Source: Dendrobates tinctorius
Lineage: Eukaryota
Length of the DNA: 64,000 nt
Direction: 5' to 3'
Assembly (NCBI RefSeq): GCF_039654945.1
Contig: NW_027361928.1
Location: 992,001-1,056,000 of the forward strand
This document shows positions 1 to 64,000 of this stretch, piece after piece. The first letter of the stretch is position 1. Each line of letters starts with the position of its first letter. The notes under the pieces were generated by a model. The model was not told where the DNA came from. It made no database searches and was given only the letters and a program-made list of their open reading frames with translations. The position numbers were made by a program, and so were the translations under genes.

Positions 1-790
1 GAGTGGAGAAGGAGATCTTGGGACGATCGAAGGTTGCGTGCGGGTAGGTACCTAGAGGCCATGTCACAGATGTAAGGAGGACTCAGGTTGTGGACGGCTT
101 TGTATGTCATGGTTAGGGTTTTGAATTGGAGCCTCTGGACGATAGGAAGCCAATGAGGGGCCTGGCATAGGGGGGAGGCTGGGGAATAGCGGGGAGACAG
201 GTAGATTAGTCGGGCAGCAGAGTGTAGGATGGACTGGAGCGGAGCCAGAGTGCTAGAGGGGAGGCCAGAGAGTAGGAGGTTGCAGTAGTCGAGGCGGGAG
301 ATGATAAGGGCGTGCACTAGTGTTTTTGTGGTTGAGGAATGAGCGGATCCGGGAAATATTTTTGAGTTTGCGGCGGCAGGAGGAGGCGAGGGCTTGGATA
401 TGTGGTTTGAAAGAGAGCGCAGAGTCGAGGATCACCCCGAGGCACCGAGTGTGCGGGACTGGGGAAAGAGAGCAGCGGTTGACATTGACCGATCGGTCTG
501 GTGGAGGGGTGGAGTGAGATGGGGAAAGATGATGAATTCTGCTTTGTCCATGTTCAGTTTGAGAAAGCAAGCAGAGAAGAAGGCTGAGACAGCGGACAGA
601 CATTGTGGGATGTCGGTCAGTACGGAGGCGAGGTCGGGTCCAGATAGGTAGATCTAGAGGCGATACTGCAAACCGTGGGATTCTAGGAGCTGTCCCAGGC
701 GGAAGGTGTAGATGGAGAAGAGCAGGGGTCCGAGGACAGAGCCTTGGGGAACACCGGCAGGGGGCGCGGTGAGGAGGCGGTGTGTGAAGC
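1..790 (-). mobile_element. L2-clade LINE 3' fragment in APEH intron 9 (left)
   Basis: Degenerate RT C-terminal peptides ([46 protein letters not shown]). Confidence 0.85.
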
Positions 791-852
791 CCTGCACAGG
801 ACTCCTCGCACACTGGGGGGTGGGGGGGTTACAGTTTGAGGTCGGTTCTCAC

Positions 853-3800
853 CACAGTTTCCTCCGGTCAGGTCCACAAAGAACAAGGCGGACCTAGAGG
901 CAGAGATCTGGGGTCAGTAATGTTATTATGGAGGTGGTTAGCATTGTGATTACGGGGGCAGCCTCGCAGCATCTTAGGCCGTTACCTCCGGTTAGCGCAG
1001 TACTTTAAGCCGAGGCGGTAGGGACTGTGCCACCAGCCCACAAACAGCACGCCCGTGTCATCCGGTGACCAGAAGGCCTGGCAGGAGGGGAGAGCAGCGT
1101 CACGTGCAGGCATCAGGCGGTATTACGATGGTGGCGGCTAATGCTCACCTGACCCGGGGAGACGGCAGCGGGGATTCCCTCCAGCACAGAGATGTTGCCG
1201 CTCTCGATGTCCAGCACACACAGCGCCGGGACGCTCTTACCCACCAGACACTCGCCCCAGTCCTCATGGAGAACGAACTGATCTCCCTGCAGAAGGAAGA
1301 ACGCAGAGTAATGGCCGACACCGACGCGCGAGAGCGGGGAGCAGAGGACGCGCGAGAGCGGGGAGCAGAGGACGCGCGAGAGCGGGGAGCAGAGGACGCG
1401 CGAGAGCGGGGAGCAGAGGACGCGCGAGAGCGGGGAGCAGAGGACGAGCGAGAGCGGGGAGCAGAGGACGAGCGAGAGCGGGGAGCAGAGGACGAGCGAG
1501 AGCGGGGAGCAGAGGACGAGCGAGAGCGGGGAGCAGAGGACGAGCGAGAGCGGGGAGCAGAGGACGAGCGAGAGCGGGGAGCAGAGGACACCGACGAGCG
1601 AGAGCGGGGAGCAGAGGACACCGACGTGCGAGAGCGGGGAGCAGAGGACACCGACGTGCGAGAGCGGGGAGCAGAGGACACCGACGTGCGAGAGCGGGGA
1701 GCAGAGGACACCGACGTGCGAGAGCGGGGAGCAGAGGACACCGACGTGCGAGAGCGGGGAGCAGAGGACACCGACGTGCGAGAGCGGGGAGCAGAGGACA
1801 CCGACGTGCGAGCGCGGGGAGCAGAGGACGCCGATGTGTGAGGTGCAGTGCAGAGCGGGGAAGGGGGTGCGGTGCAGAACGTGGGGGAGGGGGTGAGGTG
1901 CAGAACGCGGGGGAGGGGGTGAGGTGCAGAGCGCGGGGGAGGGGGTGCGGTGCAGAGCGCGGGGGAGGGGGTGCGGTGCAGAGCGCGGGGAAGGGGGTGC
2001 GGTGCAGAGCGCGGGGTGCCCTCACCTTCACAGTTTTCTCGGCGCCGTCCTCTTCTTCTTCTGCTGCGAGATTTTTGGCATCGAAGAACGACTTGGTTTT
2101 CGGTCTCTTCTTCTCGGCGATGTACAGAAGATGTGTCTCTGAGTGCGACCAGGACAGAGACCCGAACTGCTCTGCAGGGAAAAGACAGGCGAAGTAAGGG
2201 CCAGGACCCCACCACGAGGCACCACCCACCACCACCACACCAGATCCCACCACGAGGCACCACCCACCACCACACCGGATCCCGCCGCAAGGCACCACCC
2301 ACCACCACCTCACCGCGAGGCACCACCCACCACCACACCGGATCCCACCGCAAGGCACCACCCATCACACTCACCGTCCTCGTACACCTTCCCGTGTTTC
2401 TCCAGCGCTGTCAGGTTGATGCTTTTCACCTTCCGGTTTCTGTCCCACACCTGAAATGAGTAGAGGAGGCGCAGTGACCTCAGAGGCTCCTACCAGACAC
2501 CCCCGGCTCTGCTCCTCACCTCCAGGAACTGCGCGTCCTCCCCGCCCCGGGTCTTGGTCTCTCGCAGGACGGCCTTCAGCGCTCCCGAGGGCGACTCCCT
2601 GCTGAGCAGTCTGGGGGGACACGGAGGGACACAGGTGACCACCACGCAGCCCGATCCCCGGGACAGTCCGACTGTTCAGCATCTGCAGGCTGCACGGTAT
2701 GGACAGCACTCCGCCATCATCCCCGGACCTCCGCTCAGCTTCCTCCATGCCTCCAATGCATGCAACTCTGGGCTCCCTCCCGCCCTGCACCGCCTCCCTG
2801 GCGGTCTCTGCCTCCCCTCACCCTTCACCCCCACCCATGTGGTCTCTGCCTCCCCTAACCCTTCACCCCCACCCATGTGGCCTCTGCCTCCCCTCGCCCT
2901 GCACCCCCACCCAAGTGGTCTTGGCCTCTGCCTCCCCGGCGGTCTCTGCCTCCCCTCGCCCTGCACCCCCACCCAAGTGGTCTCGGCCTCTGCCTCCCCG
3001 GCGGTCTCTGCCTCCCCTCGCCCTGCACCCCCACCCAAGTGGTCTCGCCCTCTGCCTCCCCGGCGGTCTCTGCCTCCCCTCCCCGGCGGTCTACGTCACT
3101 TACTCTCCTCGGATCTCGCTGCTGTTCCCGCACGCTCCGGCGTACACCACTGTGTTATTATCATGGAAGACGATGTACTGGCGGCAGAACTTCACCTGCT
3201 CGTTACGATCCAGATCTCTCTGTGCCCATTCTACAGGGGAAGAACCAGGGCTCTCATGAGGGGGCCACACTGCGCGGACAGCACTCACAGAGGACGCCCC
3301 CAACTCTGCACCCACCGGTGTTGGCCAATATACTGTTCCCCACTTATATAATAACACAATCATGTACCGCAGCTGTACAGACGTCATCACTGTCCCCATC
3401 GGGGCTCACAATCTACAATCCCATCAGCCTTCGGAGTGTGGGAGGAACCAAAGGAAACATGGGGACAACACACAGACCCCCTAAAGATGATGTGCTGGGA
3501 GGGGTTCGAATCCTGGACCCCAGTGTGCCGGTACTGACCACTGAGCCACCGTGCAATTCGTGTGTGGTGTACAGGAAAATCACACGGCCCGGACAGAACA
3601 GAAAAGATCCAACAGATCTATAGGGGGTGCAGCGGCCAGCGACAGAGAGAGCAGAAAAGCCGGAAATCCATCCGCCCGGATCTGTGAGATCACTGCAGGA
3701 GAGGGGTCGCACCCGGGTACTCCATACAGAATGTGGGTGCAAATATCCGCACCGCGGACAGAACGCAGCTGTGTAACGTAAGGATGATCTGTTTATATTC

Positions 3801-5870
3801 TATCCTGTCTCACGTACCCGCTGCTCAGCCCGTGACTCGGGGTGTCGCCTGCAAGGGTTAATCTGTCTCCTCTCAGTCCAGCATTCACCCTCTGTCCTAT
3901 GCTGCAGTGGGAGCATAAATCACACCCCGACACAGACCACGCACCCCGCTCATACACGCTGCCACCACTCCCCGAACACACGGGCGATGAGTCCCGGAGA
4001 TATTACTGCTGTCTGCCAATCACCAGGAGCGCACACTCTAAGGATATGGAGTCTTTACAGCAACAAGGCTCAGACTTATTACAGTTTTATAATAGAAAAG
4101 GTGCAGTGCTTACAATAAAAGATAAGAATATGGAAATAAAAAGTGACATACAAATATGCAAAACAGTTATAAAATAAAAGTGAGAAACTTACAGAAATAT
4201 CTAAACTTTGCAGTCTGGTATTCTGCTCCGAGGGATGAATATGGAATGGATCACACCAGCTCGGCTGTCCCTCAGTCTGTGGACAGCTCTCTATGTGTAA
4301 AGGCCTAATTTATAGATTTACTCTGGGGATCAGATTTCCAGACCAGCCGCTCAGGTTAATATTCTATATGGTAAGCACTGCACCTCTTCTATTAAAGCTT
4401 AAAACTTTAAGGCTGTGTGCACACGCTGCGGATTTGGCGGCTGCGGGTCTGCAGCAGTTTTTGCTGCGGTGTACAGTACCACGATTCCCTATGGGAATAA
4501 AAAAACGCTGTGCAGACGGTGCAGATTTTTCCACGCGGTTTTTCTGTGGTTTTGAAACCGCAGTAAGAATGGCATGTGAATTCTTTCTGCGGAATCCGCA
4601 GCGGTTTGCCATGTCCTCCATTGTGGAGATGAAAAACCGCAGAGCAATCCGCAGTGTGTGCGCGTAGCCGGATAAGTCTGAGCCTTGTTGCTGTACAGAC
4701 TCCATATCCTTAGAGTGTGCGCTCCTGGTGATTGGCAGACAGCAGTAATATCTCCGGGACTCGTCGCCCGTGTGTTCGGGGAGTGGTGGCAGCGTGTATG
4801 AGCGGGGTGCGTGGTCTGTGTCGGGGTGTGATTTATGCTCCCACTGCAGCATAGGACAGAGGGTGAATGCTGGACTGAGAGGAGACAGATTAACCCTTGC
4901 AGGCGACACCCCAAGTCACGGGCTGAGCAGCGGGTACGTGACAGGCAGGTGAGCTGGACTTTCTTTTCCACAATAGCCAGCAGGAGTGTAGGTGGGGTCA
5001 GGGCCACTATTGCGCCCCCCGGAGGCAGACTAACCTGTGTACACGTTGCTGTACTTTCCACCATACTGTGTGGTGACCTCAGGTCCGATGGACGCACTGG
5101 ACAGAGACGGGAACTGGCAGAGATGACGGTAGAACGCCGCCACGTCCTGCACCACCTGGGAAAACAGAAGGCGAAGTGATAGAGGAGCAAACAATCAGGA
5201 GGAGGAGTGCAGGCAGCCAATCAGGAGGAGGAGAGCGGGTAGCCAGCCAGCCAATCAGGAGGAGGAGAGCGGGCAGCCAGCCAATCAGGAGGAGGAGAGC
5301 AGGCAGCCAGCCAATCAGGAGGAGAGCGCCCAGCAAGCCAACCAGCCAATCAGGAGGAGGAGAGCGGGCAGCCAGCCAATCAGGAGGAGGAGAGCAGCCT
5401 GCCAGCCAATCAGAAAGAGGAGAGCAGCCAGCCAGAAGGTGAGCAGCCAGCCAATCAGGAGGAGGAGTGCAGCCAGCCAATCAGGAGGAGGAGTGCAGCC
5501 AGCCAATCAGGAGGAGGAGTGCAGCCAGCCAATCAGAAGGAGAAAAACAGGCAGCCAGCCAGCCAATCAGGAGAAGAAAAACAGGCAGCCAATCAGGAGG
5601 AGGAGTGCAGCCAGCCAATCAGGAGGAGAAAAACAGGCAGCCAGCCAGCCAATCAGGAGGAGGAGTGCAGCCAGCCAATCAGAAGGAGAAAAACAGGCAG
5701 CCAGCCAGCCAATCAGGAGGAGGAGTGCAGCCAGCCAATCAGGAGGAGCCATGTCGCTGGGACTTGCAGTCCACTGATGAAGAGGTGGGAGGCGTAGTCC
5801 TCGGTGTGGCCTCAGGCAGCAGCTCGGCTCCGCACTCACTCTGTGGCCCTCTCACCTGAGCCGCCGCCAT
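853..5870 (-). CDS. APEH: Acylaminoacyl-peptide hydrolase (APEH), left copy, exons 1-9; continues beyond the window start
   Basis: Hand-spliced GT-AG exons: 5856-5870 (MAAAQ), 5035-5155, 3104-3230 ([24 protein letters not shown]), 2520-2610 (LLSRESPSG), 2375-2450, 2026-2171 ([20 protein letters not shown]), 1149-1286 ([27 protein letters not shown]), 986-1077 ([16 protein letters not shown]), 853-893. Phases are consistent and the peptides match vertebrate APEH as I recall it. Confidence 0.95.
1315..2015. repeat. APEH intron 6 minisatellites (21/27-bp GCGAGAGCGGGGAGCAGAGGAC and ~25-bp GGTGCAGAGCGCGGGGGAGGGG); shorter duplicate at 54660-55120
   Basis: Direct tandem units visible. Confidence 0.9.
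3345..3554 (-). mobile_element. Degenerate tRNA-derived SINE (V-SINE-like); duplicate at ~56384-56593
   Basis: Ends ...ttcgaatcctggaccccag...accactgagccaccgtgc, resembling the reverse complement of a tRNA-like head (A/B boxes) of frog SINEs. Recognised from memory. Confidence 0.5.
3806..4943. mobile_element. Foldback/long inverted repeat element with ~300-bp arms; duplicate at ~56845-57984
   Basis: 3810-4078 is the reverse complement of 4673-4942. Inverted similarity continues at 4083-4116 vs 4368-4410. Termini are TGT...ACA. Confidence 0.8.
4411..4669. mobile_element. MITE (PIF/Harbinger-like) nested in the right foldback arm
   Basis: TIRs ggctgtgtgcacacgctgcggatt / aatccgcagtgtgtgcgcgtagcc, preceded by TAA. 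Confidence 0.65.
5185..5750. repeat. APEH intron 1 CCAAT-containing minisatellite (AGCCAATCAGGAGGAGGAG..); duplicate at 58225-58505
   Basis: About 18 GCCAATCAG units in the left copy and about 9 in the right. Confidence 0.9.
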
Positions 5871-6297
5871 CAGTACACACGCCCTCCTGGGAGAAGCAGC
5901 ACTGCAGCTGTCACCCCCGCCCCGACTCCGTGGCTTTTCCTGATTTCTCTGATTGGTTCTCCCACCTCTGGGGGCGGAGCCACACATGACAGTTTCATCA
6001 GTTGGCGGAATACGCGCAGGACGGAAGTCACGTGATTCGCTCGCCTCTAGCGCCATGACGTCACCGAGGCGCTGGGTCACGTGACACCTGGCGGCCATGT
6101 TTTCTGAGGGCAGAGCTCTAGCGCATCCGCCGCCATATTTGATGAGGGAATGTAATGCCGCAAAGGAGAAGTGAGTGCAGAGTGTGCACGGGGCGCTGTG
6201 TGCGGGTCTGGGGCCCTAGGAGAAGGAGGCCGCTGGGCAGTATAAAGAGCGGCTGTCCCGTCCTGAGACCCTTCTGCCTCATCTCTCAGCAGCCGCC
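5871..6297. promoter_or_regulatory. CpG-rich bidirectional promoter APEH/NICN1 (left)
   Basis: 427 bp lie between the divergent ATGs. Motifs: GC boxes (5915-5922, 5972-5977), ATTGG 5952-5956, ETS+E-box CGGAAGTCACGTGA 6022-6035, CRE TGACGTCA 6056-6063, GTCACGTGAC 6076-6085, YY1-like GCCATNTT at ~6094 and ~6132, TATAAA 6241-6246. Confidence 0.85.
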
Positions 6298-14721
<8,424 letters not shown>

Positions 14722-15219: not shown

Positions 15220-18200
15220 ATATGGGGGAGCAGTGCTGATTATAGGGGGCGCGGTGCTGATTATAGGGGAGCCACTTGCTTTGATTTTACGGGGTGTGGC
15301 AATGATTATAGGGGGAGCCACCTGTGCTGATTATAGGGGGAGCAGTGCTGATTATAGGGGGCACGGTGCTAATTATAGGGGGAGCCTCCTGCTCTGATTA
15401 TAGGGGGAGCAGTGCTGATTATAGGGGGCACGGTGCTGATTATAGGGGGAGCCTCCTGCTCTGATTATAGAGGGAGCGGTGCTGATTATAGGAGGAGTCG
15501 CTTGCTCTAATTATAGGGGGAGCCGCCGGTGCTGATTATAGGGGGCACGGTGCTAATTATAGGGAGAGCCGCCTGCTCTGATTATAGGGGGAGCAGTGCT
15601 GATTATAGGGGGAGCAGTGCTGATTATAGGGGGAGCCGCCCACTCTGATTATAGGGGGAGCTGCGCTGATTATAGGGGGAGCCGCGCACTCTGATTATAG
15701 GGGGAGCTGCGCTGATTATAGGGGGAGCCGCCCACTCTGATTATAGGGGGAGCGGTGCTGATTATAGGGGGAGCAGTGCTGATTATAGGGAGAGCCGCCT
15801 GCTCTGATTATAGGGGGAGCAGTGCTGATTATAGGGGGAGCAGTGCTGATTATAGGGGGAGCCGCCCACTCTGATTATAGGGGGAGCTGCGCTGATTATA
15901 GGGGGAGCCGCGCACTCTGATTATAGGGGGAGCGGTGCTGATTATAGGGGGAGCCGCGCACTCTGATTATAGGGGGAGCTGCGCTGATTATAGGGGGAGC
16001 CGCCCACTCTGATTATAGGGGGAGCGGTGCTGATTATAGGGGGAGCCGCGCACTCTGATTATAGGGGGAGCTGCGCTGATTATAGGGGGAGCCGCCCACT
16101 CTGATTATAGGGGGAGCTGCGCTGATTATAGGGGGAGCCGCCCACTCTGATTATAGGGGGAGCTGCGCTGATTATAGGGGGAGCCGCGCACTCTGATTAT
16201 AGGGGGAGCGGTGCTGATTATAGGGGGAGCCGCGCACTCTGATTATAGGGGGAGCTGCGCTGATTATAGGGGGAGCCGCCCACTCTGATTATAGGGGGAG
16301 CGGTGCTGATTATAGGGGGAGCCGCGCACTCTGATTATAGGGGGAGCTGCGCTGATTATAGGGGGAGCCGCCCACTCTGATTATAGGGGGAGCTGCGCTG
16401 ATTATAGGGGGAGCCGCCCACTCTGATTATAGGGGGAGCTGCGCTGATTATAGGGGGAGCCGCGCACTCTGATTATAGGGGGAGCGGTGCTGATTATAGG
16501 GGGAGCCGCGCACTCTGATTATAGGGGGAGCTGCGCTGATTATAGGGGGAGCCGCCCACTCTGATTATAGGGGGAGCGGTGCTGATTATAGGGGGAGCCG
16601 CGCACTCTGATTATAGGGGGAGCTGCGCTGATTATAGGGGGAGCCGCCCACTCTGATTATAGGGGGAGCTGCGCTGATTATAGAGGGAGCCGCCCACTCT
16701 GATTATAGGGGGAGCGGTGCTGATTATAGGGGGAGCCGCGCACTCTGATTATAGGGGGAGCGGTGCTGATTATAGGGAGAGCCGCGCACTCTGATTATAG
16801 GGGGAGCTGCGCTGATTATAGGGGGAGCCGCCCACTCTGATTATAGGGGGAGCGGTGCTGATTATAGGGAGAGCCGCCCACTCTGATTATAGGGGGAGCG
16901 TTGCTGATTATAGGGGGAGCCGCCCGCTCTGACTAGGGGGAGCGGTGCTGATTATAGGGGGAGCTGCCTGCACTGATTATAGGGGTGTGGTGCTGATTAT
17001 AGGGGGAGCAGTACTGATTATAGGGGTGTGGTGCTGATTATAGGGGGAGCCGCCCTCTGATTATACAGAGCGTGGGGCTGATTATAGGGGGTGTGGGGCT
17101 GATTATAGGGGGAGCGGTGCTGATTATAGGGGGAGCCACCGGTGCCGACTATAGGGGGAGCTGCGCTGATTATAGGGGTAGCCTCCTGCTCTGATTTTAC
17201 GGGGTGTGGCACTGATTATAGGGGGAGCCACCTGTGCTGATTATAGGGGGGGACAGCGCGCTCTGATTATAGGGGGAGCCGCTTGCTCTGATTATAGGGG
17301 GAGCCGCCTGCTCTGATTATAGGTGGAGGAGTGCTGATTATAGGTGGCACGGTTCTAATTATAGGGAGAGCCTCCTGCGCTGATTTTAGGGGGAGCGGTG
17401 CTGATTATAGGGGGAGTCACTTGCTCTAATTATAGGGGGAGCAGCCGGTGCTGATTATAGGGGGAGCTGCGCTGATTATAGGGGGAAGCCGCCCGCTCTG
17501 ATTATAAGGGGAGCGGTGTTGATTATAGGGGGAGCCGCCTGCGCTGATTATAGGGGGGTGGTGCTGATTATAGGGGAAGCTGCACTGATTATAGGGGGAC
17601 CACGCGCTCTGATTATAGGGGGCGTGGTGCTGATTATAGGGGGAGCCGCCTGCGCTGATTATAGGGGGTGTGGGGCTGATTATAGGGGGTGTGGTACTGA
17701 TTATAGGGGGAGCCGCCCTCTGATTATAGGAGCGGTGCTGATTATAGGGGGAGCTGCGCTGATTATAGGGGGCGTGGTGCTGATTATAGGGGGAGCCGCC
17801 TGCGCTGATTATAGGGGGTGTGGGGCTGATTATAGGGGGAGCCGCCCTCTCTGATTATAGGGGGAGCTGCGCTGATTATAGGGGGATCGGTGCTGATTAT
17901 AGGGGGAGCCGCCCGCTCTGATTTTACGGGGTGTGGCACTGATTATAGGGGGGCCGCTTGCTCTGATTAGGGGGAGCCACCTGTGCTGATTATAGGGGGG
18001 ACTGCGCTCTCTGATTATAGGGGGAGCCGCCTACGCTGATTATAGGGGGTGTGGTGCTGATTATAGGGGGATCCGTCTGCGCTGATTATAGGGGGATCCG
18101 TCTGCTCTGATTATAGGGGGATCCGCGCTGATTATAGGGGGATCCGTCTGCTCTGATTATAGAGGGATCCGCGCTGATTATAGGGGGATCCGTCTGCTCT

Positions 18201-27595: not shown

Positions 27596-27653
27596 GTGTG
27601 GTCGCTCGCTTTCCTCCGTGCTGCGCTGTATCTCCTCCATCTCCTGTCCGCAG

Positions 27654-34520: not shown

Positions 34521-34521
34521 T

Positions 34522-34822: not shown

Positions 34823-34826
34823 TCTC

Positions 34827-35750: not shown

Positions 35751-35767
35751 CGCTGCACTGTAAAGAT

Positions 35768-51000: not shown

Positions 51001-54000
51001 AAATGCCCCCAAACTGCCCTGTGGAAAAAGGAGGCTGTGAGAGCACTGACAGGTGGCGGGGGTTATCGGGGTGCAGGGGGTCGCTCACCATCTGCAGGTC
51101 TGGGAACAACGTCCACCACAGAGGAGGTGACCTTCGTGTACCAGTCATACTGAAATAAATGGGAGACTCCATTACAATCTACGGCAGAGTGGACCGCCGC
51201 AGAGCTGCATACGGTGGGGGGCAACCCAGGAAGCATCAAGGGGGGCAGCTAGCCAAAGACCGAGCGAGGGACTGTGAGGAAAGGACACTGCAAGGGGAGC
51301 GTCGTGCTGTGAGGGGTGGGGGGGGAGCGTCGTGCTGTGCGGGGTGGGGGGGGAGCGTCGTGCTGTGCGGGGTGGGGGGGGAGCGTCGTGCTGTGCGGGG
51401 TGGGGGGGGAGCGTCGTGCTGTGCGGGGTGGGGGGGGAGCGTCGTGCTGTGCGGGGTGGGGGGGGAGCGTCGTGCTGTGCGGGGTGGGGGAGCGTCGTGC
51501 TGTGCGGGGTGGGGGGAGCGTCGTGCTGTGCGGGGTGGGGGGAGCGTCGTGCTGTGCGGGGTGCAGTTCACAATCCGCGGCAGGTGAGAGCGCGGGATAC
51601 AGGCCGCCCCGTAGTGAGGGGCAGCAGCGGCTCCAGACTTCAATCAATAATATAAATCAAAAATAATGAGCAGAATTAAGTCTTCAGAGCAGTCACCCTG
51701 ATACTCTGCTATCTCCTAACTCCTCCTGGGAACAAAGACCATTACTGTACGAGGAACCGGCGACCCCACAACCAGCAAAACAAACACCAGAAATCAGGAA
51801 CATGGAGGCGACACCAACCATCAGCATCTGGCAGCACTGCAGGTGAGGGCCGAGAGCTTCGCACTGCAGGTACACAATGCGACACTTGTCAGGACTGAGC
51901 CGAGGAGAGAAGACAGCAGAACAGTCACACGAAAGAGTCTCTGGAAAACAGGAGCAGAAAGAGGAGCCTTAAAGAGAAGTCAGATACAGTACCCCAGAGC
52001 TGCACTCACTATTCTGCTGGTGCAGTCACTGTGTACATACATTACATTACTGATCCTGAGTTACCTCCTGTATTATACCCCAGAGCTGCACTCACTATTC
52101 TGCTGGTGCAGTCACTGTGTACATACATTACTGATCCTGAGTTACATCCTGTATTATACCCCAGAGCTGCACTCACTATTCTGCTGGTGCAGTCACTGTG
52201 TACATACATTACATTACTGATCCTGAGTTACATCCTGTATTATACCCCAGAGCTGCACTCACTATTCTGCTGGTGCAGTCACTGTGTACATACATTACAT
52301 TACTGATCCTGAGTTACATCCTGTATTATACTCCAGAGCTGCACTCACTATTCTGCTGGTGCAGTCACTGTGTACATACATTACTGATCCTGAGTTACAT
52401 CCTGTATTATACTCCAGAGCTGCACTCACTATTCTGCTGGTGCAGTCACTGTGTACATACATTACATTACTGATCCTGAGTTACATCCTGTATTATACTC
52501 CAGAGCTGCACTCACTATTCTGCTGGTGCAGTCACTGTGTACATACATTACATTACTGATCCTGAGTTACATCCTGTATTATACTCCAGAGCTGCACTCA
52601 CTATTCTGCTGGTGCAGTCACTGTGTACATACATTACTGATCCTGAGTTACATCCTGTATTATACTCCAGAGCTGCACTCACTATTCTGCTGGTGCAGTC
52701 ACTGTGTACATACATTACTGATCCTGAGTTACATCCTGTATTATACTCCAGAGCTGCACTCACTATTCTGCTGGTACAGTCACTGTGTACATACATTACT
52801 GATCCTGAGTTACATCCTGTATTATACCCCAGAGCTGCACTCATTATTCTGCTGGTGCAGTCACTGTGTACATACATTACATTACTGATCCTGAGTTACA
52901 TCCTGTATTATACCCCAGAGCTGCACTCACTATTCTGCTGGTGCAGTCACTGTGTACCTACATTACATATCCTGAGTTACATTTATATAGCGCCATTTAT
53001 TCCATGGCGCTTTACATGTGAAAAGGGGAAACACAGACAAGTACAATAAACGTGTGTAAGACAAGGGACACACAAGTACAGGAGGAGAGGGGACCCTGCC
53101 CGCGAGGGCTCACAGTCTACAGGGAGGGTGAGGACACAGTAGGAGATAGTAGAGCAGGTCGTGCTGTGGTTCAGTAGACCGAGGATCACTGCAGGCTGTA
53201 GGCTTGTCGGATCAGGTCGGTCTTCAGGTTCTTCTTGAAGGTTTCCATGGTAGGTGAGAGTCTGATGTGTTGCGGCAGGGAGTTCCAGAGTATGGGGGAA
53301 GCACGGGAGAAGTCTTGTATGTGGTTGTGGGAAGAAGAGATAAGGGGGGAATAGAGGAGGAGATCTTGGGACGATCGAAGGTTGCGTGCGGGTAGGTACC
53401 TAGAGACCATGTCACAGATGTAAGGAGGACTCAGGTTGTGGACGGCTTTGTATGTCATGGTTAGGGTTTTGAATTGGAGCCTCTGGGTGATAGGAAGCCA
53501 GTGAGGGACCTGGCATAGGGGGGAGGCTGGGGAATAGCGGGGAGACAGGTAGATTAGTCGGGCAGCAGAGTGTAGGATGGACTGGAGCGGAGCCAGAGTG
53601 CTAGAGGGGAGGCCAGAGAGTAGGAGGTTGCAGTAGTCGAGGCGGGAGATAAGGGCGTGCACTAGTGTTTTTGTGGTTGAGGAATGAGCGGATCCGGGAA
53701 ATATTTTTGAGTTTGCGGCAGCAGGAGGAGGCGAGGGCTTGGATATGTGGTTTGAAAGAGAGCGCAGAGTCGAGGATCACCCCGAGGCACCGAGTGTGCG
53801 GGACTGGGGAAAGAGAGCAGCGGTTGACATTGACGGATCGGTCTGGTGGAGGGGTGGAGTGAGATGGGGAAAGATGATGAATTCTGCTTTGTCCATGTTC
53901 AGTTTGAGAAAGCAAGCAGAGAAGAAGGCTGAGACAGCGGACAGACATTGTGGGATGTCGGTCAGTACGGAGGCGAGGTCGGGTCCAGATAGGTAGATCT

Positions 54001-57000
54001 AGAGGCGATACTGCAAACCGTGGGATTCTAGGAGCTGTCCCAGGCGGAAGGTGTAGATGGAGAAGAGCAGGGGTCCGAGGACAGAGCCTTGGGGAACACC
54101 GGCAGGGGGCGCGGTGAGGAGGCGGTGTGTGAAGCCCTGCACAGGACTCCTCGCACACTGGGGGGTGGGGGGGTTACAGTTTGAGGTCGGTTCTCACCAC
54201 AGTTTCCTCCGGTCAGGTCCACAAAGAACAAGGCGGACCTAGAGGCAGAGATCTGGGGTCAGTAATGTTATTATGGAGGTGGTTAGAATTGTGATTACGG
54301 GGGCAGCCTCGCAGCATCTTAGGCCGTTACCTCCGGTTAGCGCAGTACTTTAAGCCGAGGCGGTAGGGACTGTGCCACCAGCCCACAAACAGCACGCCCG
54401 TGTCATCCGGTGACCAGAAGGCCTGGCAGGAGGGGAGAGCAGCGTCACGTGCAGGCATCAGGCGGTATTACGATGGTGGCGGCTAATGCTCACCTGACCC
54501 GGGGAGACGGCAGCGGGGATTCCCTCCAGCACAGAGATGTTGCCGCTCTCGATGTCCAGCACACACAGCGCCGGGACGCTCTTACCCACCAGACAATCGC
54601 CCCAGTCCTCATGGAGAACGAACTGATCTCCCTGCAGAAGGAAGAACGCAGAGTAATGGCCGACACCGACGTGCGAGAGCGGGGAGCAGAGGACGCCGAC
54701 GCGCGAGAGCGGGGAGCAGAGGACGCCGACGCGCGAGAGCGGGGAGCAGAGGACGCCGACGCGCGAGAGCGGGGAGCAGAGGACGCAGACGCGCGAGAGC
54801 GGGGAGCAGAGGACGCAGACGCGCGAGAGCGGGGAGCAGAGGACGCAGACGCGCGAGAGCGGGGAGCAGAGGACGCAGACGCGCGAGAGCGGGGAGCAGA
54901 GGACGCAGACGTGCGAGAGCGGGGAGCAGAGGACGCAGACGTGCGAGAGCGGGGAGCAGAGGACGCAGACGTGCGAGAGCAGAGCGGGGGAGGGGGTGCG
55001 GTGCAGAACGTGGGGGAGGGGGTGCGGTGCAGAACGTGGGGGAGGGGGTGCGGTGCAGAACGCGGGGGAGGGGGTGCGGTGCAGAACGCGGGGGAGGGGG
55101 TGCGGTGCAGAGCGCGGGGTGCCCTCACCTTCACCGTTTTCTCGGCGCCGTCCTCTTCTTCTTCTGCTGCGTGATTTTTGGCATCGAAGAACGACTTGGT
55201 TTTCGGTCTCTTCTTCTCGGCGATGTACAGAAGATGTGTCTCTGAGTGCGACCAGGACAGAGACCCGAACTGCTCTGCAGGGAAAAGACAGGCGAAGTAA
55301 GGGCCAGGACCCCACCACGAGGCACCACCCACCACCACCACACCAGATCCCACCACGAGGCACCACCCACCACCACACCGGATCCCACCGCAAGGCACCA
55401 CCCATCACACTCACCGTCCTCGTACACCTTCCCGTGTTGCTCCAGCGCTGTCAGGTTGATGCTTTTCACCTTCCGGTTTCTGTCCCACACCTGAAATGAG
55501 TAGAGGAGGCGCAGTGACCTCAGAGGCTCCTACCAGACACCCCCGGCTCTGCTCCTCACCTCCAGGAACTGCGCGTCCTCCCCGCCCCGGGTCTTGGTCT
55601 CTCGCAGGACGGCCTTCAGCGCTCCCGAGGGCGACTCCCTGCTGAGCAGTCTGGGGGGACACGGAGGGACACAGGTGACCACCACGCAGGCCGATCCCCA
55701 GGACAGTCCGACTGTTCAGCATCTGCAGGCTGCACGGTATGGACAGCACTCCGCCATCATCCCCGGACCTCCGCTCAGCTTCCTCCATGCCTCCAATGCA
55801 TGCAACTCTGGGCTCCCTCCCGCCCTGCACCCCCTCCCTGGCGGTCTCTGCCTCCCCTCACCCTTCACCCCCACCCATGTGGTCTCTGCCTCCCCTAACC
55901 CTTCACCCCCACCCATGTGGCCTCTGCCTCCCCTCGCCCTGCACCCCCACCCAAGTGGTCTCGGCCTCTGCCTCCCCGGCGGTCTCTGCCTCCCCTCGCC
56001 CTGCACCCCCACCCAAGTGGTCTCGGCCTCTGCCTCCCCGGCGGTCTCTGCCTCCCCTCGCCCTGCACCCCCACCCAAGTGGTCTCGGCCTCTGCCTCCC
56101 CGGCGGTCTCTGCCTCCCCTCCCCGGCGGTCTCCGTCACTTACTCTCCTCGGATCTCGCTGCTGTTCCCGCACGCTCCGGCGTACACCACTGTGTTATTA
56201 TCATGGAAGACGATGTACTGGCGGCAGAACTTCACCTGCTCGTTACGATCCAGATCTCTCTGTGCCCATTCTACGGGGAAGAACCAGGGCTCTCATGAGG
56301 GGGCCACACTGCGCGGACAGCACTCACAGAGGACGCCCCCAACTCTGCACCCACCGGTGTTGGCCAATATACTGTTCCCCACTTATATAATAACACAATC
56401 ATGTACCGCAGCTGTACAGACGTCATCACTGTCCCCATCGGGGCTCACAATCTACAATCCCATCAGCCTTCGGAGTGTGGGAGGAACCAAAGGAAACATG
56501 GGGACAACACACAGACCCCCTAAAGATGATGTGCTGGGAGGGGTTCGAATCCTGGACCCCAGTGTGCCGGTACTGACCACTGAGCCACCGTGCAATTCGT
56601 GTGTGGTGTACAGGAAAATCACACGGCCCGGACAGAACAGAAAAGATCCAACAGATCTATAGGGGGTGCAGCGGCCAGCGACAGAGAGAGCAGAAAAGCC
56701 GGAAATCCATCCGCCCGGATCTGTGAGATCACTGCAGGAGAGGGGTCGCACCCGGGAACTCCATACAGAATGTGGGTGCAAATATCCGCACCGCGGACAG
56801 AACGCAGCTGTGTAACGTAAGGATGATCTGTTTATATTCTATCCTGTCTCACGTACCCGCTTCTCAGCCCGTGACTCGGGGTGTCGCCTGCAAGGGTTAA
56901 TCTGTCTCCTCTCAGTCCAGCATTCACCCTCTGTCCTATGCTGCAGTGGGAGCATAAATCACACCCCGACACAGACCACGCACCCCGCTCATACACGCTG

Positions 57001-58626
57001 CCACCACTCACCGAACACACGGGCGATGAGTCCCGGAGATATTACTGCTGTCTGCCAATCACCAGGAGCGCACACTCTAAGGATATGGAGTCTTTACAGC
57101 AACAAGGCTCAGACTTATTACAGTTTTATAATAGAAAAGGTGCAGCGCTTACAATAAAAGATATAAGAATATGGAAATAAAAAGTGACATACAAATATGC
57201 AAAACAGTTATAAAATAAAAGGGAGAAACTTACAGAAATATCTAAACTTTGCAGTCTGGTATTCTGCTCCGAGGGATGAATATGGAATGGATCACACCAG
57301 CTCGGCTGTCCCTCAGTCTGTGGACAGCTCTCTATGTGTAAAGGCCTAATTTATAGATTTAACCTGGGGATCAGATTTCCAGACCAGCCGCTCAGGTTAA
57401 TATTCTATATGGTAAGCACTGCACCTCTTCTATTAAAGCTTAAAACTTTAAGGCTGTGTGCACACGCTGCGGATTTGGCGGCTGCGGGTCTGCAGCAGTT
57501 TTTGCTGCGGTGTACAGTACCACGATTCCCTATGGGAATAAAAAACCGCTGTGCAGACGGTGCAGATTTTTCCACGCGGTTTTTCTGTGGTTTTGAAACC
57601 GCAGTAAGAATGGCATGTGAATTCTTTCTGCGGAATCCGCAGCGGTTTGCCATGTCCTCCATTGTGGAGATGAAAAACCGCAGAGCAATCCGCAGTGTGT
57701 GCGCGTAGCCGGATAAGTCTGAGCCTTGTTGCTGTACAGACTCCATATCCTTAGAGTGTGCGCTCCTGGTGATTGGCAGACAGCAGTAACATCTCCGGGA
57801 CTCGTCGCCCGTGTGTTCGGGGAGTGGTGGCAGCGTGTATGAGCGGGGTGCGTGGTCTGTGTCGGGGTGTGATTTATGCTCCCACTGCAGCATAGGACAG
57901 AGGGTGAATGCTGGACTGAGAGGAGACAGATTAACCCTTGCAGGCGACACCCCAAGTCACGGGCTGAGCAGCGGGTACGTGACAGGCAGGTGAGCTGGAC
58001 TTTCTTTTCCACAATAGCCAGCAGGAGTGTAGGTGGGGTCAGGGCCACTATTGCGCCCCCCGGAGGCAGACTAACCTGTGTACACGTTGCTGTACTTTCC
58101 ACCATACTGTGTGGTGACCTCAGGTCCGATGGACGCACTGGACAGAGACGGGAACTGGCAGAGATGACGGTAGAACGCCGCCACGTCCTGCACCACCTGG
58201 GAAAACAGAAGGCGAAGTGATAGAGGAGCAAACAATCAGGAGGAGGAGTGCAGGCAGCCAATCAGGAGGAGGAGAGCGGGTAGCCAGCCAGCCAATCAGG
58301 AGGAGGAGAGCGGGCAGCCAGCCAATCAGGAGGAGGAGAGCGGGCAGCCAGCCAATCAGGAGGAGGAGAGCGGGCAGCCAGCCAATTAGGAGAAAAACAG
58401 GCAGCCAGCCAATCAGGAGGAGGAGAGCAGCCTGCCAGCCAATCAGAAGGAGGAGAGCAGCCAGCCAATCAGGAGGAGGAGTGCAGCCAGCCAATCAGGA
58501 GGAGCCATGTCGCTGGGACTTGCAGTCCACTGATGAAGAGGTGGGAGGCGTAGTCCTCGGTGTGGCCTCAGGCAGCAGCTCGGCTCCGCACTCACTCTGT
58601 GGCCCTCTCACCTGAGCCGCCGCCAT
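36073..58626 (-). CDS. APEH: Acylaminoacyl-peptide hydrolase (APEH, S9C serine peptidase), right copy, complete, 22 exons, 723 aa
   Basis: Exons: 58612-58626, 58076-58196, 56144-56270, 55560-55650, 55415-55490, 55129-55274, 54494-54631, 54331-54422, 54198-54238, 51819-51940, 51089-51149, 50921-51018, 50765-50819, 49890-49978, 40592-40730, 40182-40265, 38457-38537, 38281-38369, 38017-38207, 37841-37943, 36252-36358, 36073-36178. These sum to 2172 nt in an open frame. Motifs: HGGP, VNYRGS, GGSHGG (Ser codon 38139-38141), LGAEDHRV (Asp), GNNHSL (His), stop TGA. Confidence 0.96.
36510..37630. repeat. ~40-bp minisatellite, APEH intron 20
   Basis: CCTGTACATAAGAGCCCGTCCCGTCACAYGAGACCCC units. Confidence 0.92.
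38531..40072. repeat. 88-91-bp minisatellite, APEH intron 16, containing the exon 17 splice acceptor
   Basis: ~17 units of GGACCCCTGTAGGGAGAAGACAGC..GGTAATGAGGGT. Confidence 0.93.
40765..43058. repeat. 24-bp minisatellite, APEH intron 14 (resumes at 49627-49865 after the L1)
   Basis: Near-perfect GAGGAGCAGAGTGAAGAGCGGGGC units in homogeneous variant blocks. Confidence 0.95.
43059..49628 (+). mobile_element. L1-clade LINE in APEH intron 14 (antisense to the gene); ORF1 largely deleted, ORF2 disrupted
   Basis: EN ([16 protein letters not shown]) from 43444; RT ([26 protein letters not shown] at 45496-45507); C-terminal part to 49372; AATAAA 49597 and poly(A) 49617-49628; TSD AAGAGCAGGGCG at 43047-43058 / 49627-49638. 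Confidence 0.93.
45973..48246. mobile_element. Non-autonomous piggyBac-like element inserted in L1 ORF2
   Basis: TTAA TSD (45969-45972 / 48247-48250); imperfect CCCTTT.../...AAGAGG ends; internal ~0.4-kb tandem subrepeats. Removing it rejoins ORF2 as [14 protein letters not shown]. Confidence 0.85.
50020..50745. repeat. 30-bp minisatellite, APEH intron 13
   Basis: GCGGAGGAACAAGGCGCRGAGGCACACAAM units. Confidence 0.92.
51295..51562. repeat. ~28-bp G-rich minisatellite, APEH intron 10
   Basis: GAGCGTCGTGCTGTGCGGGGTGGGGGG units. Confidence 0.88.
51990..52982. repeat. 81/86-bp minisatellite, APEH intron 9
   Basis: ~12 units of CCAGAGCTGCACTCACTATTCTGCTGGTGCAGTCACTGTGTACATACATTAC..GTATTATAC. 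Confidence 0.93.
52981..54135 (-). mobile_element. 5'-truncated L2-clade LINE in APEH intron 9 (right)
   Basis: [32 protein letters not shown] peptides, plus an L2-type 3' end (tgtaaagcgccatggaataaatggcgctatataaat on -). Confidence 0.88.
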
Positions 58627-59053
58627 CAGTACACACGCCCTCCTGGGAGAAGCAGCACTGCAGCTGTCACCCCCGCCCCGACTCCGTGGCTTTTCCTGAT
58701 TTCTCTGATTGGTTCTCCCACCTCTGGGGGCGGAGCCACACATGACAGTTTCATCAGTTGGCGGAATACGCGCAGGACGGAAGTCACGTGATTCGCTCGC
58801 CTCTAGCGCCATGACGTCACCGAGGCGCTGGGTCACGTGACATCTGGCGGCCATGTTTTCTGAGGGCAGAGCTCTAGCGCATCCGCCGCCATATTTGATG
58901 AGGGAATGTAATGCCGCAAAGGAGAAGTGAGTGCAGAGTGTGCACGGGGCGCTGTGTGCGGGTCTGGGGGCCTAGGAGAAGGAGGCCGCTGGGCAGTATA
59001 AAGAGCGGCTGTCCCGTCCTGAGACCCTTCTGCCTCATCTCTCAGCAGCCGCC
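58627..59053. promoter_or_regulatory. CpG-rich bidirectional promoter APEH/NICN1 (right)
   Basis: Near-identical duplicate of 5871-6297 with all listed motifs retained. Confidence 0.85.
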
Positions 59054-62000
59054 ATGGCCCAGCAGGCCGCTCCGTGCAGCATCCGGACCCCGGTGCAGCT
59101 CCAGGTGGGAGACGGGAGCTCAGATCCGGGCGTCCGCGTCATCGACGTCACCTTCCCTGCAGCAACGCCGCAGAATGTGAGTGTCACCGCGCAGTCCTGT
59201 GTCACCGCGCAGTCCTGTGTCACCGCCCCGGATCGTGTGACCGCGCAGTCCTGTGTCACCGCCTCAGATCGTGTGACCGCGCAGTCCTGTGTCACCGCCT
59301 CAGATCGTGTGACCGCGCAGTCCTGTGTCACCGCCCCGGATCGTGTGACCGCGCAGTCCTGTGTCAGCGCCCCGGGTCGTGTGACCGCGCAGTCCTGTGT
59401 CAGCCCCGGGTCGTGTCAGCGCACAGTCCTGTGTCACTGCCTCAGATCGTGTGACCGCGCAGTCCTGTGTCACTGCCTCAGATCGTGTGACCGCGCAGTC
59501 CTGTGTCACTGCCTCAGATCGTGTGACCGCGCAGTCCTGTGTCAGCGCCCCGGATCGTGTGACCGCGCAGTCCTGTGTCACCGCCTCAGATCGTGTGACC
59601 GCGCAGTCCTGTGTCACTGCCTCAGATCGTGTGACCGCGCAGTCCTGTGTCAGCGCCCCGGATCGTGTGACCGCGCAGTCCTGTGTCAGCGCCCCGGGTC
59701 GTGTGACCGCGCAGTCCTGTGTCAGCCCCGGGTCGTGTCAGCGCACAGTCCTGTGTCACTGCCTCAGATCGTGTGACCGCGCAGTCCTGTGTCACTGCCT
59801 CAGATCGTGTGACCGCGCAGTCCTGTGTCAGCGCCCCGGATCGTGTGACCGCGCAGTCCTGTGTCACCGCCTCAGATCGTGTGACCGCGCAGTCCTGTGT
59901 CACTGCCTCAGATCGTGTGACCGCGCAGTCCTGTGTCAGCGCCCCGGATCGTGTGACCGCGCAGTCCTGTGTCACCGCCTCAGATCGTGTGACCGCGCAG
60001 TCCTGTGTCACCACCTCAGATCGTGTGACCGCACAGTCCTGTGTCACCGCGCAGTCCTGTGTCACTGCCTCAGATCGTGTGACCGCGCAGTCCTGTGTCA
60101 GCGCCCCGGATCGTGTGACCGCGCAGTCCTGTGTCACCGCCTCAGATCGTGTGACCGCGCAGTCCTGTGTCACTGCCTCAGATCGTGTGACCGCGCAGTC
60201 CTGTGTCAGCGCCCCGGATCGTGTGACCGCGCAGTCCTGTGTCACCGCCTCAGATCGTGTGACCGCGCAGTCCTGTGTCACCACCTCAGATCGTGTGACC
60301 GCGCAGTCCTGTGTCACCACCTCAGATCGTGTGACCGCGCAGTCCTGTGTCAGCGCCCCGGGTCGTGTGACCGCGCAGTCCTGTGTCAGCCCCGGGTCGT
60401 GTCAGCGCGCAGTCCTGTGTCAGCGCCCCGGGTCGTGTGACCGCGCAGTCCTGTGTCAGCGCCCCGGGTCGTGTGACCGCGCAGTCCTGTGTCAGCGCCC
60501 CGGGTCATGTGACCGCGCAGTCTTGTGTCACCGCCTCAGATCGTGTGACCGCGCAGTCCTGTGTCACCGCCCCGGATCGTGTGACCGCGCAGTCCTGTGT
60601 CACCGCCCCGGATCGTGTGACCGCGCAGTCCTGTGTCACCGCCCCTGATCGTGTGACCGCGCAGTCCTGTGTCACCGCCTCGGATCGTGTGACCGCGCAG
60701 TCCTGTGTCACCGCCTCAGATCGTGTGACCGCGCAGTCCTGTGTCACCACCTCAGATCGTGTGACCGCGCAGTCCTGTGTCAGCGCCCCGGGTCGTGTGA
60801 CCGCGCAGTCCTGTGTCAGCCCCGGGTCGTGTCAGCGCGCAGTCCTGTGTCACCGCCTCAGATCGTGTGACTGCGTAGTCCTGTGTCAGCGCCCCGGGTC
60901 GTGTGACCGCGCAGTCCTGTGTCACCGCCCCGGATCGTGTGACCGCGCAGTCTTGTGTCACCGCCCCGGATCGTGTGACCGCGCAGTCTTGTGTCACCGC
61001 CCCGGATCGTGTGACCGCGCAGTCTTGTGTCACCTCCCCGGATCGTGTGACCGCCCAGTCCTGTGTCACCGCCCCGGATCATGTGACCGCGCAGTCCTGT
61101 GTCACCTCCCCGGGTTGTGTCACCGCCTAGTCCCGTGTCACCGCGCAGTCCTGTGTCACCGCCTCAGATCGTGTGACCGGCAGTCCTGTGTCACCGCCCC
61201 GGGTCGTGTGACCGCGCAGTCCTGTGTCACCGCGCAGTCCTGTGTCACCGCCTCGGATCGTGTGACCGCGCAGTCCTGTGTCACCGTGCTCCTCCGGTCC
61301 AATCTCCACATGGCTCTGCACTCCCCGTGCTATCCTCCCTCTGCCCTAGTCCCATCTCCCCATCCTTTCCTCTCTCTCGTCGCACTGCCCATCCCCGATC
61401 CTTTCTCTGCATTGCTTTGCGCTCCCCGTCCTTTCCTCCCTCTTCTTGTCACCTTGTGCTCCCCGTTCTTTGCTCCATCTCCCCAGGTCCAGTCTCCCCG
61501 CCCTTTCCTCCCTCTCCGTGTCGCTCTGTGCTCCCCATCTTTTCCTCCCTCTCACCTGGTCCCTTCTTCCCGTCCTTTTCTCTCTCTTCCCCGGTCCCTT
61601 CTTCCCGTCCTTTCCTCCCTCTCCTCCATTCCCCTCTCTGCATCGCTCTGCCTGCCCCGTCCTTTCCTCCCTCTCCTCCATTCCCCTCTCTGCATCGCTC
61701 TGCCTGCCCCGTCCTTTCCTCCCTCTCCCCCTGTACATTCTTCCTCTCCTTTTCTCCCTCTCCCCTGGTCCCGTCTCCCCGTCCTTTCCTCCCTCTCTCC
61801 GTCGCTCTGCGCTCCCAGAGCTTTCCTCCCTCTCTGCGTCACTCTGCCCACCCCGTCCTTTACTCCCTCTCCCCCGATCCCGTCTTTTCCTCCCTCTCCC
61901 CCAGTCCCGTCTTCCCATCCTTTCCTCCCTCTCCCTCGGTCCCGTCATTTCCTTCCTCTCCTCCGGTCCCCTCTCCCCATCCTTTCCCCCTCTCTGCATC

Positions 62001-63516
62001 GCTCTTCCCGCCCCGTCCTTTCCTCCCTCTCCCCCGATACATTCTTCCTCTCCTTTTCTCCCTCTCCCCTGGTCCCGTCTCCCCATCCTTTCCTCCCTCT
62101 CTGCGTCGCTCTGCGCTCCTAGAGCCTTCCTCCCTCTCCCACGGTCCCGTCTTCCCGTCCTTTCCTCCCTCTCCTCTGGTCCTGTCTTCCCATCCTTTCC
62201 CCCTCTCTGCGTCACTCTGCCCGCCCCGTCCTTTCCTCCCTCTCCCCCGGTCCCGTCTTTTCCTCCCTCTCCCCCGGTCCCGTCTTCCCATCCTTTCCAC
62301 CCTCTCCCTTGGTCCCCTCTCCCCCGGTCCCCTCTCCCCATCCTTTCCCCCTCTCTGCGTCACTCTGCCAGCCCTGTCCTTTCCTCCCTCTCCCCCGGTC
62401 CCGTCTTCCCATCCTTTCCACCCTCTCCCTTGGTCCCGTCTCCCTGTCCTTTCCTCCCTCTCCCCCAGTCCCCTCTCCCCATCCTTTCCCCCTCTCTGCG
62501 TCACTCTGCCCGCCCTTTCCTCCCATTCCCCTGGTCCCTTCTTTTCCTCCCTCTCCCCCGGTCCCGTCTTCCCATCCTTTCCACCCTCTCCCTTGGTCCC
62601 GTCTCCCTGTCCTTTCCTCCCTCTCCCCCAGTCCCCTCTCCCCATCCTTTCCCCCTCTCTGCGTCACTCTGCCCGTCCTTTCCTCCCTCTCCCTTGGTCC
62701 CGTCTCCCTGTCCTTTCCCCCTCTCTGCGTGACTCTGCCCTCCCCCTCCTTTCCTCCCTCTCCCCCGGTCCCGTCTTCCCATCCTTTCCTCCCTCTCCCT
62801 CGGTCCCGTCTCCCTGTCCTTTCCTCCCTCTCCACCATGTCTGCTCCGCACTCTCTGATTCTCTGCCCTCTCAGATCCAGGAGATTTCCTTCAGGAATTT
62901 CTACACCGCTTTCCTCACTGTAAAATTCCAGCAGTTGCGACCGACAGCGACCAAGAAGAGCAAGACATGGCGGACGTGCGTGAGGAACCTGCCCCTGATG
63001 CCGAACCCCCACATGGAGGAGGGGTCCCAGGACTACGTGTCTGTGTGCAGGCAGCAGGTGATGTGGCCCCCGCTGGCTGTGGCCCCTGGCGGGAGTTGTT
63101 GTGCTGACGCGCTCTGTCCCCGCAGATGGCGTGTGCCGCCGATAACGTGACGTCCCTGCGCCTCGTCCTGCGGCAGCCGTCGCCTGTCTGGCTGTCATTT
63201 ACCCTGGAGGAATTGCAGATCAATCCCCCTGGCAGGCAGGTAAGGGGTCCGCAGCACGTACCGAGGCGCTGCAGCAGCCGCTCTCACACTGGGCCCCCCA
63301 CAGCATTACAGCGGAGTAATGGCGCCACGCGGTGCTGAGTGGCCCCGCCGGCCGGAAGCTTATTCCTCATTCTGGATCCTTGGGGGAGGGGACATGGAGA
63401 GGTGGTGGGCGTGTCCTAATGCTTATTAACCTCTTCCTTCCCAGAGTCCACAGAAGCCGTGTTCCTGGTGGTTGTCTCGTCTGCCGCCCGGAGAGGAGCT
63501 GCAGAAGCTGCACAAG
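59054..63516 (+). CDS. NICN1: Nicolin-1 (NICN1), right copy, exons 1-4; continues beyond the window end
   Basis: Exons 59054-59176, 62875-63057, 63126-63239, 63445-63516. Near-identical to the left copy (two substitutions seen). Confidence 0.94.
59177..61287. repeat. NICN1 intron 1 18/30-bp minisatellite (right copy, ~2.1 kb)
   Basis: Same unit as 6421-11296 but less than half the length. Confidence 0.95.
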
Positions 63517-64000
63517 GTGATGGTGGAGGATGGAGCAGAGATGGTCGTGGTGCCGCTGACGCATCGCGGCGTCCGTATTCTGCGGGGGAGCGCGCGTCGG
63601 GACATCAGGGGGACATCGGGGGGGAGCGCGTCGGGACATGGGGGGTGCGGAGCGCATTGGGGGGAGAGCGTCAGGACATCGGGGGGGGGAGAGCGTCAGG
63701 ACATGGGTGGGGGGGAGAGCGTCAGGACATGGGGGGAGCGCGTCAGGACATCGGGGGGGAGCGCGTCGGGACATGGGGGGTGCGGAGCGCATTGGGGGGA
63801 GAGCGTCAGGACATCGGGGGGGGGAGAGCGTCAGGACATGGGTGGGGGGGAGAGCGTCAGGACATGGGGGGGGGGGAGGGAGAGCGTCAGGACATCGGGG
63901 GGGAGAGCGTCAGGACATGGGGGGGTGGGGGAGTCAGGACATGGTTGCATGCTGGGACCTGTCCGGCAGTAGTTGTACATTATTGGGGGGCAGGGAGATG

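Follow-up and report, generated by a model that had tools for sequence, protein, structure and literature searches.

Where dendrobatoid frogs carry a single copy of the neighborhood, the genes APEH and NICN1 stand head to head, MST1 lies tail to tail with APEH, and AMT is found downstream of NICN1. According to gene tables, which are our source for the relatives and for the flanks of the DNA described here, Anomaloglossus baeobatrachus has one compact set (MST1 > < APEH, NICN1 > AMT >), Ranitomeya imitator has one NICN1-APEH-MST1 set with an APEH coding range of 55.6 kb, and R. variabilis has one APEH beside NICN1, with no record on the MST1 side. An earlier note on this DNA, written from its letters, had suggested a look at the orthologous loci of related frogs, and all three have a single APEH beside NICN1. 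Dendrobates tinctorius shares this order, but unlike its single-set relatives, it has part of the set doubled. The doubled part was studied in a 64-kb stretch of contig NW_027361928.1 (hereafter the window), which holds a left copy of the gene pair (APEH-1 and NICN1-1) and a right copy (APEH-2 and NICN1-2). We consider it likely that the two copies arose by a real, recent, lineage-specific tandem duplication in D. tinctorius.

Part of this arrangement can already be read from public records. The RefSeq proteins XP_073414984.1/985.1 and XP_073414992.1, together with nicolin-1 XP_073414988.1, are encoded by the same DNA as the window copies. The RefSeq annotation lists two APEH genes, while it is silent on the duplication, the truncated AMT, and the junction, and NICN1-2 has no nicolin-1 product of its own. 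The large coding range of R. imitator APEH resembles that of APEH-1 (53.3 kb), and at the APEH-1 locus the gene table places an MST1-like gene 1.1 kb past the stop codon. APEH has also been duplicated in another anuran, as Spea bombifrons has two "acylamino-acid-releasing enzyme-like" proteins encoded on one chromosome. These are 74% and 69% identical to the same query and fall into separate 90% clusters, so the Spea pair looks older than that of D. tinctorius.

A second class of comparable systems is artefactual. False haplotype duplications in long-read assemblies likewise consist of near-identical adjacent copies whose divergence falls in the range of heterozygosity. They are usually found as haplotigs of their own, or else where a contig ends or has a gap. 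The join in D. tinctorius, by contrast, is within a hifiasm contig that has no gap, and one of the genes differs in length by 30 kb between the copies.

Two collinear copies and the probable junction between them

Comparison of the window with itself (self-BLAST) returned a single same-strand collinear match, which pairs position 1 with 53349 and position 14399 with 64000 and so reaches both window edges (Table 1). As homology runs into both edges, the visible extent of the duplication is set by the window and not by biology. We computed identity by global alignment of seven unique segments, leaving the minisatellite arrays aside, and obtained 99.29% over 6,058 aligned unique bases (6,015 matches, 43 substitutions, and 7 small indels). 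The earlier note had described the copies as near-identical in unique DNA, with shared transposon insertions and intact splice sites, and each of these points was borne out. A LINE-like (long interspersed nuclear element) fragment and a hairpin element are present in each copy, and the 12 bases beside each shared exon are identical between copies except at APEH exon 3; there, one base of the intron is substituted and 1 nt of the pyrimidine tract is deleted, with GT and AG both in place. The copies are spaced 53.3 kb apart at the left edge and 49.6 kb apart at the right edge. Thus, the "~53-kb duplication" of the earlier note stands as the spacing of homologous points, but not as the length of a unit, given that the coding range of APEH-1 in the RefSeq gene table is 53,307 bp, 30.5 kb longer than the 22,782 bp of APEH-2. 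The left unit, which would begin ~48 kb before position 1 and end at 34.83 kb, must be ~83 kb, and the right unit ~50 kb. The window is 58% G+C, consists mostly of G+C-rich minisatellite arrays, and contains zero N over one whole period, which therefore includes the junction. A third unit within the window was ruled out, since every exon of APEH and NICN1 had two tblastn matches, or a single one if its counterpart falls beyond the window edges.

Both units carry an intact APEH. Joined exon translations were made by script and compared with proteins retrieved by single-exon library and word searches. The 22-exon path of APEH-2 translates exactly to the 799-amino-acid RefSeq "APEH-like" protein XP_073414992.1, its span is equal to the RefSeq coding range, its open frame is uninterrupted, and the exons with the catalytic Ser, Asp, and His are all intact. 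The joined translation of APEH-1 exons 1-9 matches residues 1-358 of RefSeq APEH X1 (XP_073414984.1) exactly, and exons 10-22 lie left of the window. RefSeq has two 799-amino-acid APEH products on this contig, 5 residues apart, one of which matches copy 1 while the other is encoded exactly by copy 2, and the proposed pair of complete APEH genes is accordingly present in the annotation. Judged by its sequence features, namely an APEH_N propeller, a Peptidase_S9 domain with a GxSxG serine, and a full-length frame, the gene is identified as APEH, or acylaminoacyl-peptidase, of peptidase family S9C. The APEH_N family of Pfam was matched by the exon at 985-1122 / 54330-54467 and Peptidase_S9 by the GGSHGG exon (38016-38237). 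Most Pfam searches with single exons were blank, and domain support is limited to these two families and a weak GCV_T match. D. tinctorius APEH is 81-85% identical to frog APEH proteins. The gene identities originally proposed for APEH, NICN1, and AMT all agree with the protein, Pfam, and structure matches.

The claim of two NICN1 genes held for the left unit and in part for the right. NICN1-1 is complete, matches RefSeq nicolin-1 X1 exactly across all six exons (tblastn), and has a gene span of 8,424 bp, in accord with the RefSeq record; 6.6 kb of its intron 1 is minisatellite. NICN1-2 is visible to exon 4 only, with exons 5-6 past the window end, and differs from NICN1-1 by two residues (P15Q and I85N), the splice flanks being identical. 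A word search with exon 2, which lies in a 220-codon open frame, retrieved the nicolin-1 of 14 frogs and a herring, while an ESM Atlas search with one NICN1 exon gave no usable match. On these sequence matches, both are assigned to NICN1, copy 1 through a full-length match to annotated nicolin-1 and copy 2 through exon 4 within the window. At the position of NICN1-2, RefSeq places a 569-amino-acid model with complete GCV_T and GCV_T_C domains, which starts 200 bp from the APEH-2 ATG and is apparently a NICN1-2/AMT run-through. The word search through NICN1-2 exon 2 did not retrieve this model, so it probably lacks that exon.

The third gene is present in the window as a remnant, as the earlier note had stated. 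Exons 2 and 3 of AMT are found in the left unit, while complete GCV_T and GCV_T_C domains are not. Exon 3 matches the human AMT structure 1WSR (E=1.3e-6, residues 57-87), and the remnant has a weak Pfam match to GCV_T (profile positions 48-79 of 255). A scan of the whole window for motifs of later AMT exons was blank, though this negative is a lead and not proof. The RefSeq gene table lists a product with GCV_T and GCV_T_C right of APEH-2 and outside the window, which indicates that an intact AMT follows the right unit. AMT exon 1 was not located, and the 12-kb satellite that separates NICN1-1 from AMT exon 2, with a GC skew of +0.33 to +0.48, may sit in AMT intron 1. Exon 3 of the remnant is followed by GCAAGT, not GTAAGT (27963-27972), which could be a GC donor or a mutated donor.

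Beyond the remnant lies a stack of transposons, the last of which is a DIRS-like element with a weak Pfam match to Phage_int_SAM_4 (tyrosine-recombinase SAM-like). This element is without its upstream half at 34830, where it abuts a 36/38-bp minisatellite array that reaches to 325 bp below the APEH-2 stop codon. The left edge of the array is likely the duplication junction. In the left unit and in the relatives, MST1 is found 0.75-1.7 kb past the APEH stop; at APEH-2, the cut transposon takes that place. The interruption of AMT after exon 3 and the lack of MST1 below APEH-2 are the pattern expected if the ends of the duplicated segment lay in AMT intron 3 and in the gap between APEH and MST1. 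The parental sequences of both junction sides are outside the window.

We propose the following account. The ancestral order would have been MST1 > < APEH / NICN1 > AMT >, of which a part that begins shortly past the APEH stop codon and ends in AMT intron 3 is now present twice, head to tail. The left unit has MST1 next to the 53-kb APEH-1, followed by NICN1-1, the satellite, and AMT exons 2-3, with its end in the transposon at 34830. The right unit begins with the 36-bp minisatellite, followed by the shorter but complete APEH-2 (22.8 kb) and NICN1-2, with the intact AMT outside the window. Such an arrangement could have originated through breakage on one side within the transposon and on the other at the minisatellite or inside it.

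Table 1. Features of the 64-kb window, with positions counted from its first letter
Feature	Position	Strand	Details
Left copy of duplicated segment	1-14399		Collinear match to 53349-64000; extends left past the window
Right copy of duplicated segment	53349-64000		Collinear match to 1-14399; extends right past the window
APEH-1, coding exons 1-9	853-6098	-	5853-6098, 5035-5152, 3104-3230, 2517-2610, 2375-2447, 2026-2171, 1149-1286, 986-1077, 853-893
APEH-2, complete, 22 coding exons	36073-58854	-	Canonical splice sites; catalytic Ser exon 38017-38207
NICN1-1, complete, six coding exons	6298-14721	+	6298-6420, 13246-13428, 13497-13610, 13813-13887, 14429-14539, 14683-14721
NICN1-2, exons 1-4	59054-63516	+	59054-59176, 62875-63057, 63126-63239, 63442-63516; tblastn
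Inter-ATG interval, predicted shared bidirectional promoter/5' untranslated region	6099-6297 (copy 1); 58855-59053 (copy 2)
Satellite, 12 kb, G-rich	15303-27554		Tandem Repeats Finder (TRF); 25/46-bp units, then 23-bp GAGGGGGGAGGGG-type unit; between NICN1-1 and AMT exon 2
AMT remnant	27653-27966	+	Exon 2, 27653-27817; exon 3, 27886-27966
Transposon stack	27971-34830		LINE-like open reading frames and DIRS-like element (- strand); boundaries partly checked
36/38-bp minisatellite	34830-35751		TRF
LINE-like fragment, APEH intron 9	3-850 / 53189-54198		Present in both copies
Hairpin element, 270-bp inverted arms	3810-4941 / 56849-57982		Present in both copies
Array pair (copy 1 vs copy 2)	1323-2016 vs 54668-55119		TRF
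Array pair (copy 1 vs copy 2)	5192-5748 vs 58238-58504		TRF
Array pair (copy 1 vs copy 2)	6425-11296 vs 59181-61286		TRF
Array pair (copy 1 vs copy 2)	11425-13204 vs 61422-62833		TRF

Tandem duplication, captured alleles, or assembled haplotypes

The two collinear copies claimed by the earlier note are plainly present in the assembled sequence, and its gene interpretation is supported in part. Whether the animal itself has both copies in tandem depends upon the assembly (GCA_039654945.1), which was built from HiFi reads >10 kb with hifiasm 0.16.1 and aggressive haplotig purging (-l 2) (PMC11152451). It was corrected with Inspector and comprises 830 contigs, with no scaffolding and 1.9% duplicated BUSCO genes (PMC11152451). 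As the junction is inside a hifiasm contig, overlapping reads across the join were needed to assemble it, and the join is probably present in the DNA of the animal. Further support comes from the breakpoint signature, from the 30-kb difference between the APEH genes, and from derived changes that fall on one side. The two APEH coding ranges are not collinear throughout, which is harder to reconcile with two alleles. Together, these four lines make a real duplication probable. Several results weigh against it, namely that a divergence of 0.7% and unequal arrays are also expected of two haplotypes in a heterozygous frog, that the contig measures a mere 1.88 Mb against an assembly N50 of 32 Mb, and that other frogs vary at the same sites, as described below.

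We compared one DNA run and three RNA-type runs, the latter from three other frogs and from other samples and studies, over positions 2017-6424. All runs were in the form of Logan contigs, in which bubbles are popped and minority variants are dropped and contig depth is not copy number; consequently, the letters at single sites can neither count copies nor tell paralogues from alleles. The RNA contigs were spliced at the five GT-AG introns predicted from APEH exon 1 to exon 6. In unique DNA, variable sites were found only at 2069, 3718, 6087, and 6214, and the alternative letter was always that of copy 2. At 2069, run X5 has T only, X8 has both A and T, and X12 has A only, while at 6214 X12 has G only, and the frogs thus have mixed combinations of copy-2 letters. 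Two other copy-2 letters, 2399 G (Q212) and 6341 A (NICN1 Q15), were absent from all three RNA runs. The DNA run has only copy-1 letters at a word depth of ~2.8; it was chosen for its copy-1 words and so is silent on copy 2. Several of the differences that the earlier note had called diagnostic therefore behave like segregating alleles, not fixed differences between paralogues, and both sequence types are widespread, with some differences private to the reference animal. Since several copy differences also vary among other frogs, 0.7% is no clean age, and we rejected the dating of the duplication from this value because part of the divergence is shared polymorphism. The shared polymorphism fits either an exchange between the units or a very recent duplication that took in two alleles and may not yet be fixed.

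From these results, one could also suppose that the duplication is real, very recent, and still polymorphic, having been formed by unequal crossing-over between different haplotypes, such that most of the 0.7% would be allelic variation that predates the duplication and was caught up in it. We regard this version as somewhat unlikely, although all four variant sites in other frogs coincide with differences between copies 1 and 2 and carry the copy-2 letter, and the letters differ among individuals, with 2399 G and 6341 A private to copy 2. The loss of minority variants from Logan contigs means that a single letter at a site is no proof of homozygosity or of a single copy, further events would be required to explain why the APEH spans differ by 30.5 kb, and the asymmetry of derived replacements is not expected of captured alleles.

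That asymmetry was evident when the copies were compared with 12 outgroup APEH sequences. All five APEH replacements (K212Q, L254H, E280D, S365C, and D529G) are derived in copy 2, as is NICN1 P15Q, while NICN1 I85 is derived in copy 1. Four of the six derived changes of copy 2 are at sites invariant in every frog compared, K212 and E280 included; S365 and D529 are conserved in most, with variation in one or two frogs. Of the seven coding replacements between the copies, five are at window positions 1251, 2069, 2399, 6341, and 13376; the other two, S365C and D529G, fall in APEH exons 10 and 15, whose copy-1 counterparts are left of the window. The one-sided APEH changes suggest, but do not prove, a relaxation of constraint on the new copy. 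Small as the numbers are, such a distribution would be expected more of a redundant new copy than of a pair of alleles. In its strongest form, the right-hand gene ("APEH-like") would be a newborn paralogue on its own path, having lost ~30 kb of intron and gained all five amino-acid changes, at positions that frogs conserve, with the neighboring NICN1 modelled only as an AMT run-through. Given expression of both APEH copies and a copy number that differs among frogs, the locus would then provide a natural dosage series for the peptidase that clears N-acetylated and oxidised proteins. We consider this reading quite unlikely.

Alternatively, the tandem could be an assembly artefact, in which the contig runs one haplotype of a single APEH-NICN1-AMT locus into the other, the two differing by 0.7%. 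The divergence and the differences in array length are within the allelic range, several copy differences vary among individuals like ordinary single-nucleotide polymorphisms (SNPs), and the contig, besides being small, is repeat-rich. In addition, 7 differences (5 replacement and 2 silent) were found in 1,568 coding bases and 36 in 4,490 non-coding bases, and these counts give no sign of purifying selection between the copies. Even so, we judge an artefact to be unlikely. The junction is at neither a gap nor a contig end in an assembly that consists of contigs only, and to join AMT intron 3 falsely to the 3' flank of APEH, hifiasm would have had to rely on reads that were chimeric or wrongly overlapped across the transposon stack, whose 6.9 kb are less than the length of the reads (PMC11152451). 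Moreover, Inspector was applied to remove expansions, the APEH coding ranges are 30.5 kb apart, and the derived replacements are distributed 5:0 on one APEH copy.

Lastly, an older genuine duplication, kept alike by gene conversion or unequal exchange so that 0.7% understates its age, is very unlikely, because R. imitator, R. variabilis, and Anomaloglossus all have one APEH beside NICN1 (with MST1 on the other side recorded in R. imitator and Anomaloglossus only) and because no transposon insertion sets the copies apart in the 10-14 kb visible of both, even though the 30.5-kb span difference and two-fold array differences accompany only 0.7% substitutions, other frogs have mixed combinations of copy-2 letters, and divergence is uneven, with 8 differences in the first 160 bases and 1 in 777 bases around NICN1 exons 2-4.

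A recent tandem duplication, our preferred reading, is an event of an ordinary kind with limited meaning outside D. tinctorius, and its two gene models are already visible in RefSeq. It would add a clean and well-delimited case of a very young tandem gene duplication that doubles a housekeeping peptidase and cuts AMT short at the junction, with a minisatellite and a transposon at the breakpoints. For users of the genome, it means that APEH and NICN1 reads map to two places, that the left AMT fragment is not a gene, and that SNP calls at the locus mix differences between paralogues with allelic ones. Should the duplication vary between frogs, it would be useful for studying the earliest stages that follow a duplication. 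Among its possible effects is the higher APEH dosage that the earlier note foresaw.

The predicted shared promoter interval, substitution pattern, and arrays

APEH (- strand) and NICN1 (+ strand) have divergent ATGs 200 bp apart, and the region between them is predicted to serve as a shared bidirectional promoter. It has a single difference between the copies (6214 C/G). One RNA contig of run X5 extends unbroken through APEH exon 1, this interval, and NICN1 exon 1 (5853-6420), and is then spliced to NICN1 exon 2. Accordingly, the divergent APEH and NICN1 transcripts probably overlap at their 5' ends, though the contigs are unstranded and thus not proof.

The substitutions between the copies are unevenly placed and unusual in kind. 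The segment 1-160 vs 53349-53508, within the LINE-like fragment of APEH intron 9, holds 8 of the 43 substitutions, or ~5% divergence vs ~0.6% elsewhere. The copies may be less alike, or differ in structure, immediately beyond the left window edge, on the side where APEH-1 has its additional 30 kb. Substitutions are skewed toward transversions, with 19 transitions vs 24 transversions overall and 6 vs 18 at isolated sites. Three of the four copy differences confirmed in other frogs are transversions, so the excess is not sequencing error. This spectrum occurs in a G+C-rich and minisatellite-dense region.

The minisatellite families are common to both copies, with lengths that differ up to two-fold (TRF). 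In the array of APEH intron 1, the repeat unit is 30 bp and contains a CCAAT motif, and TRF gave unit counts of 18.2 (copy 1) and 9.2 (copy 2).

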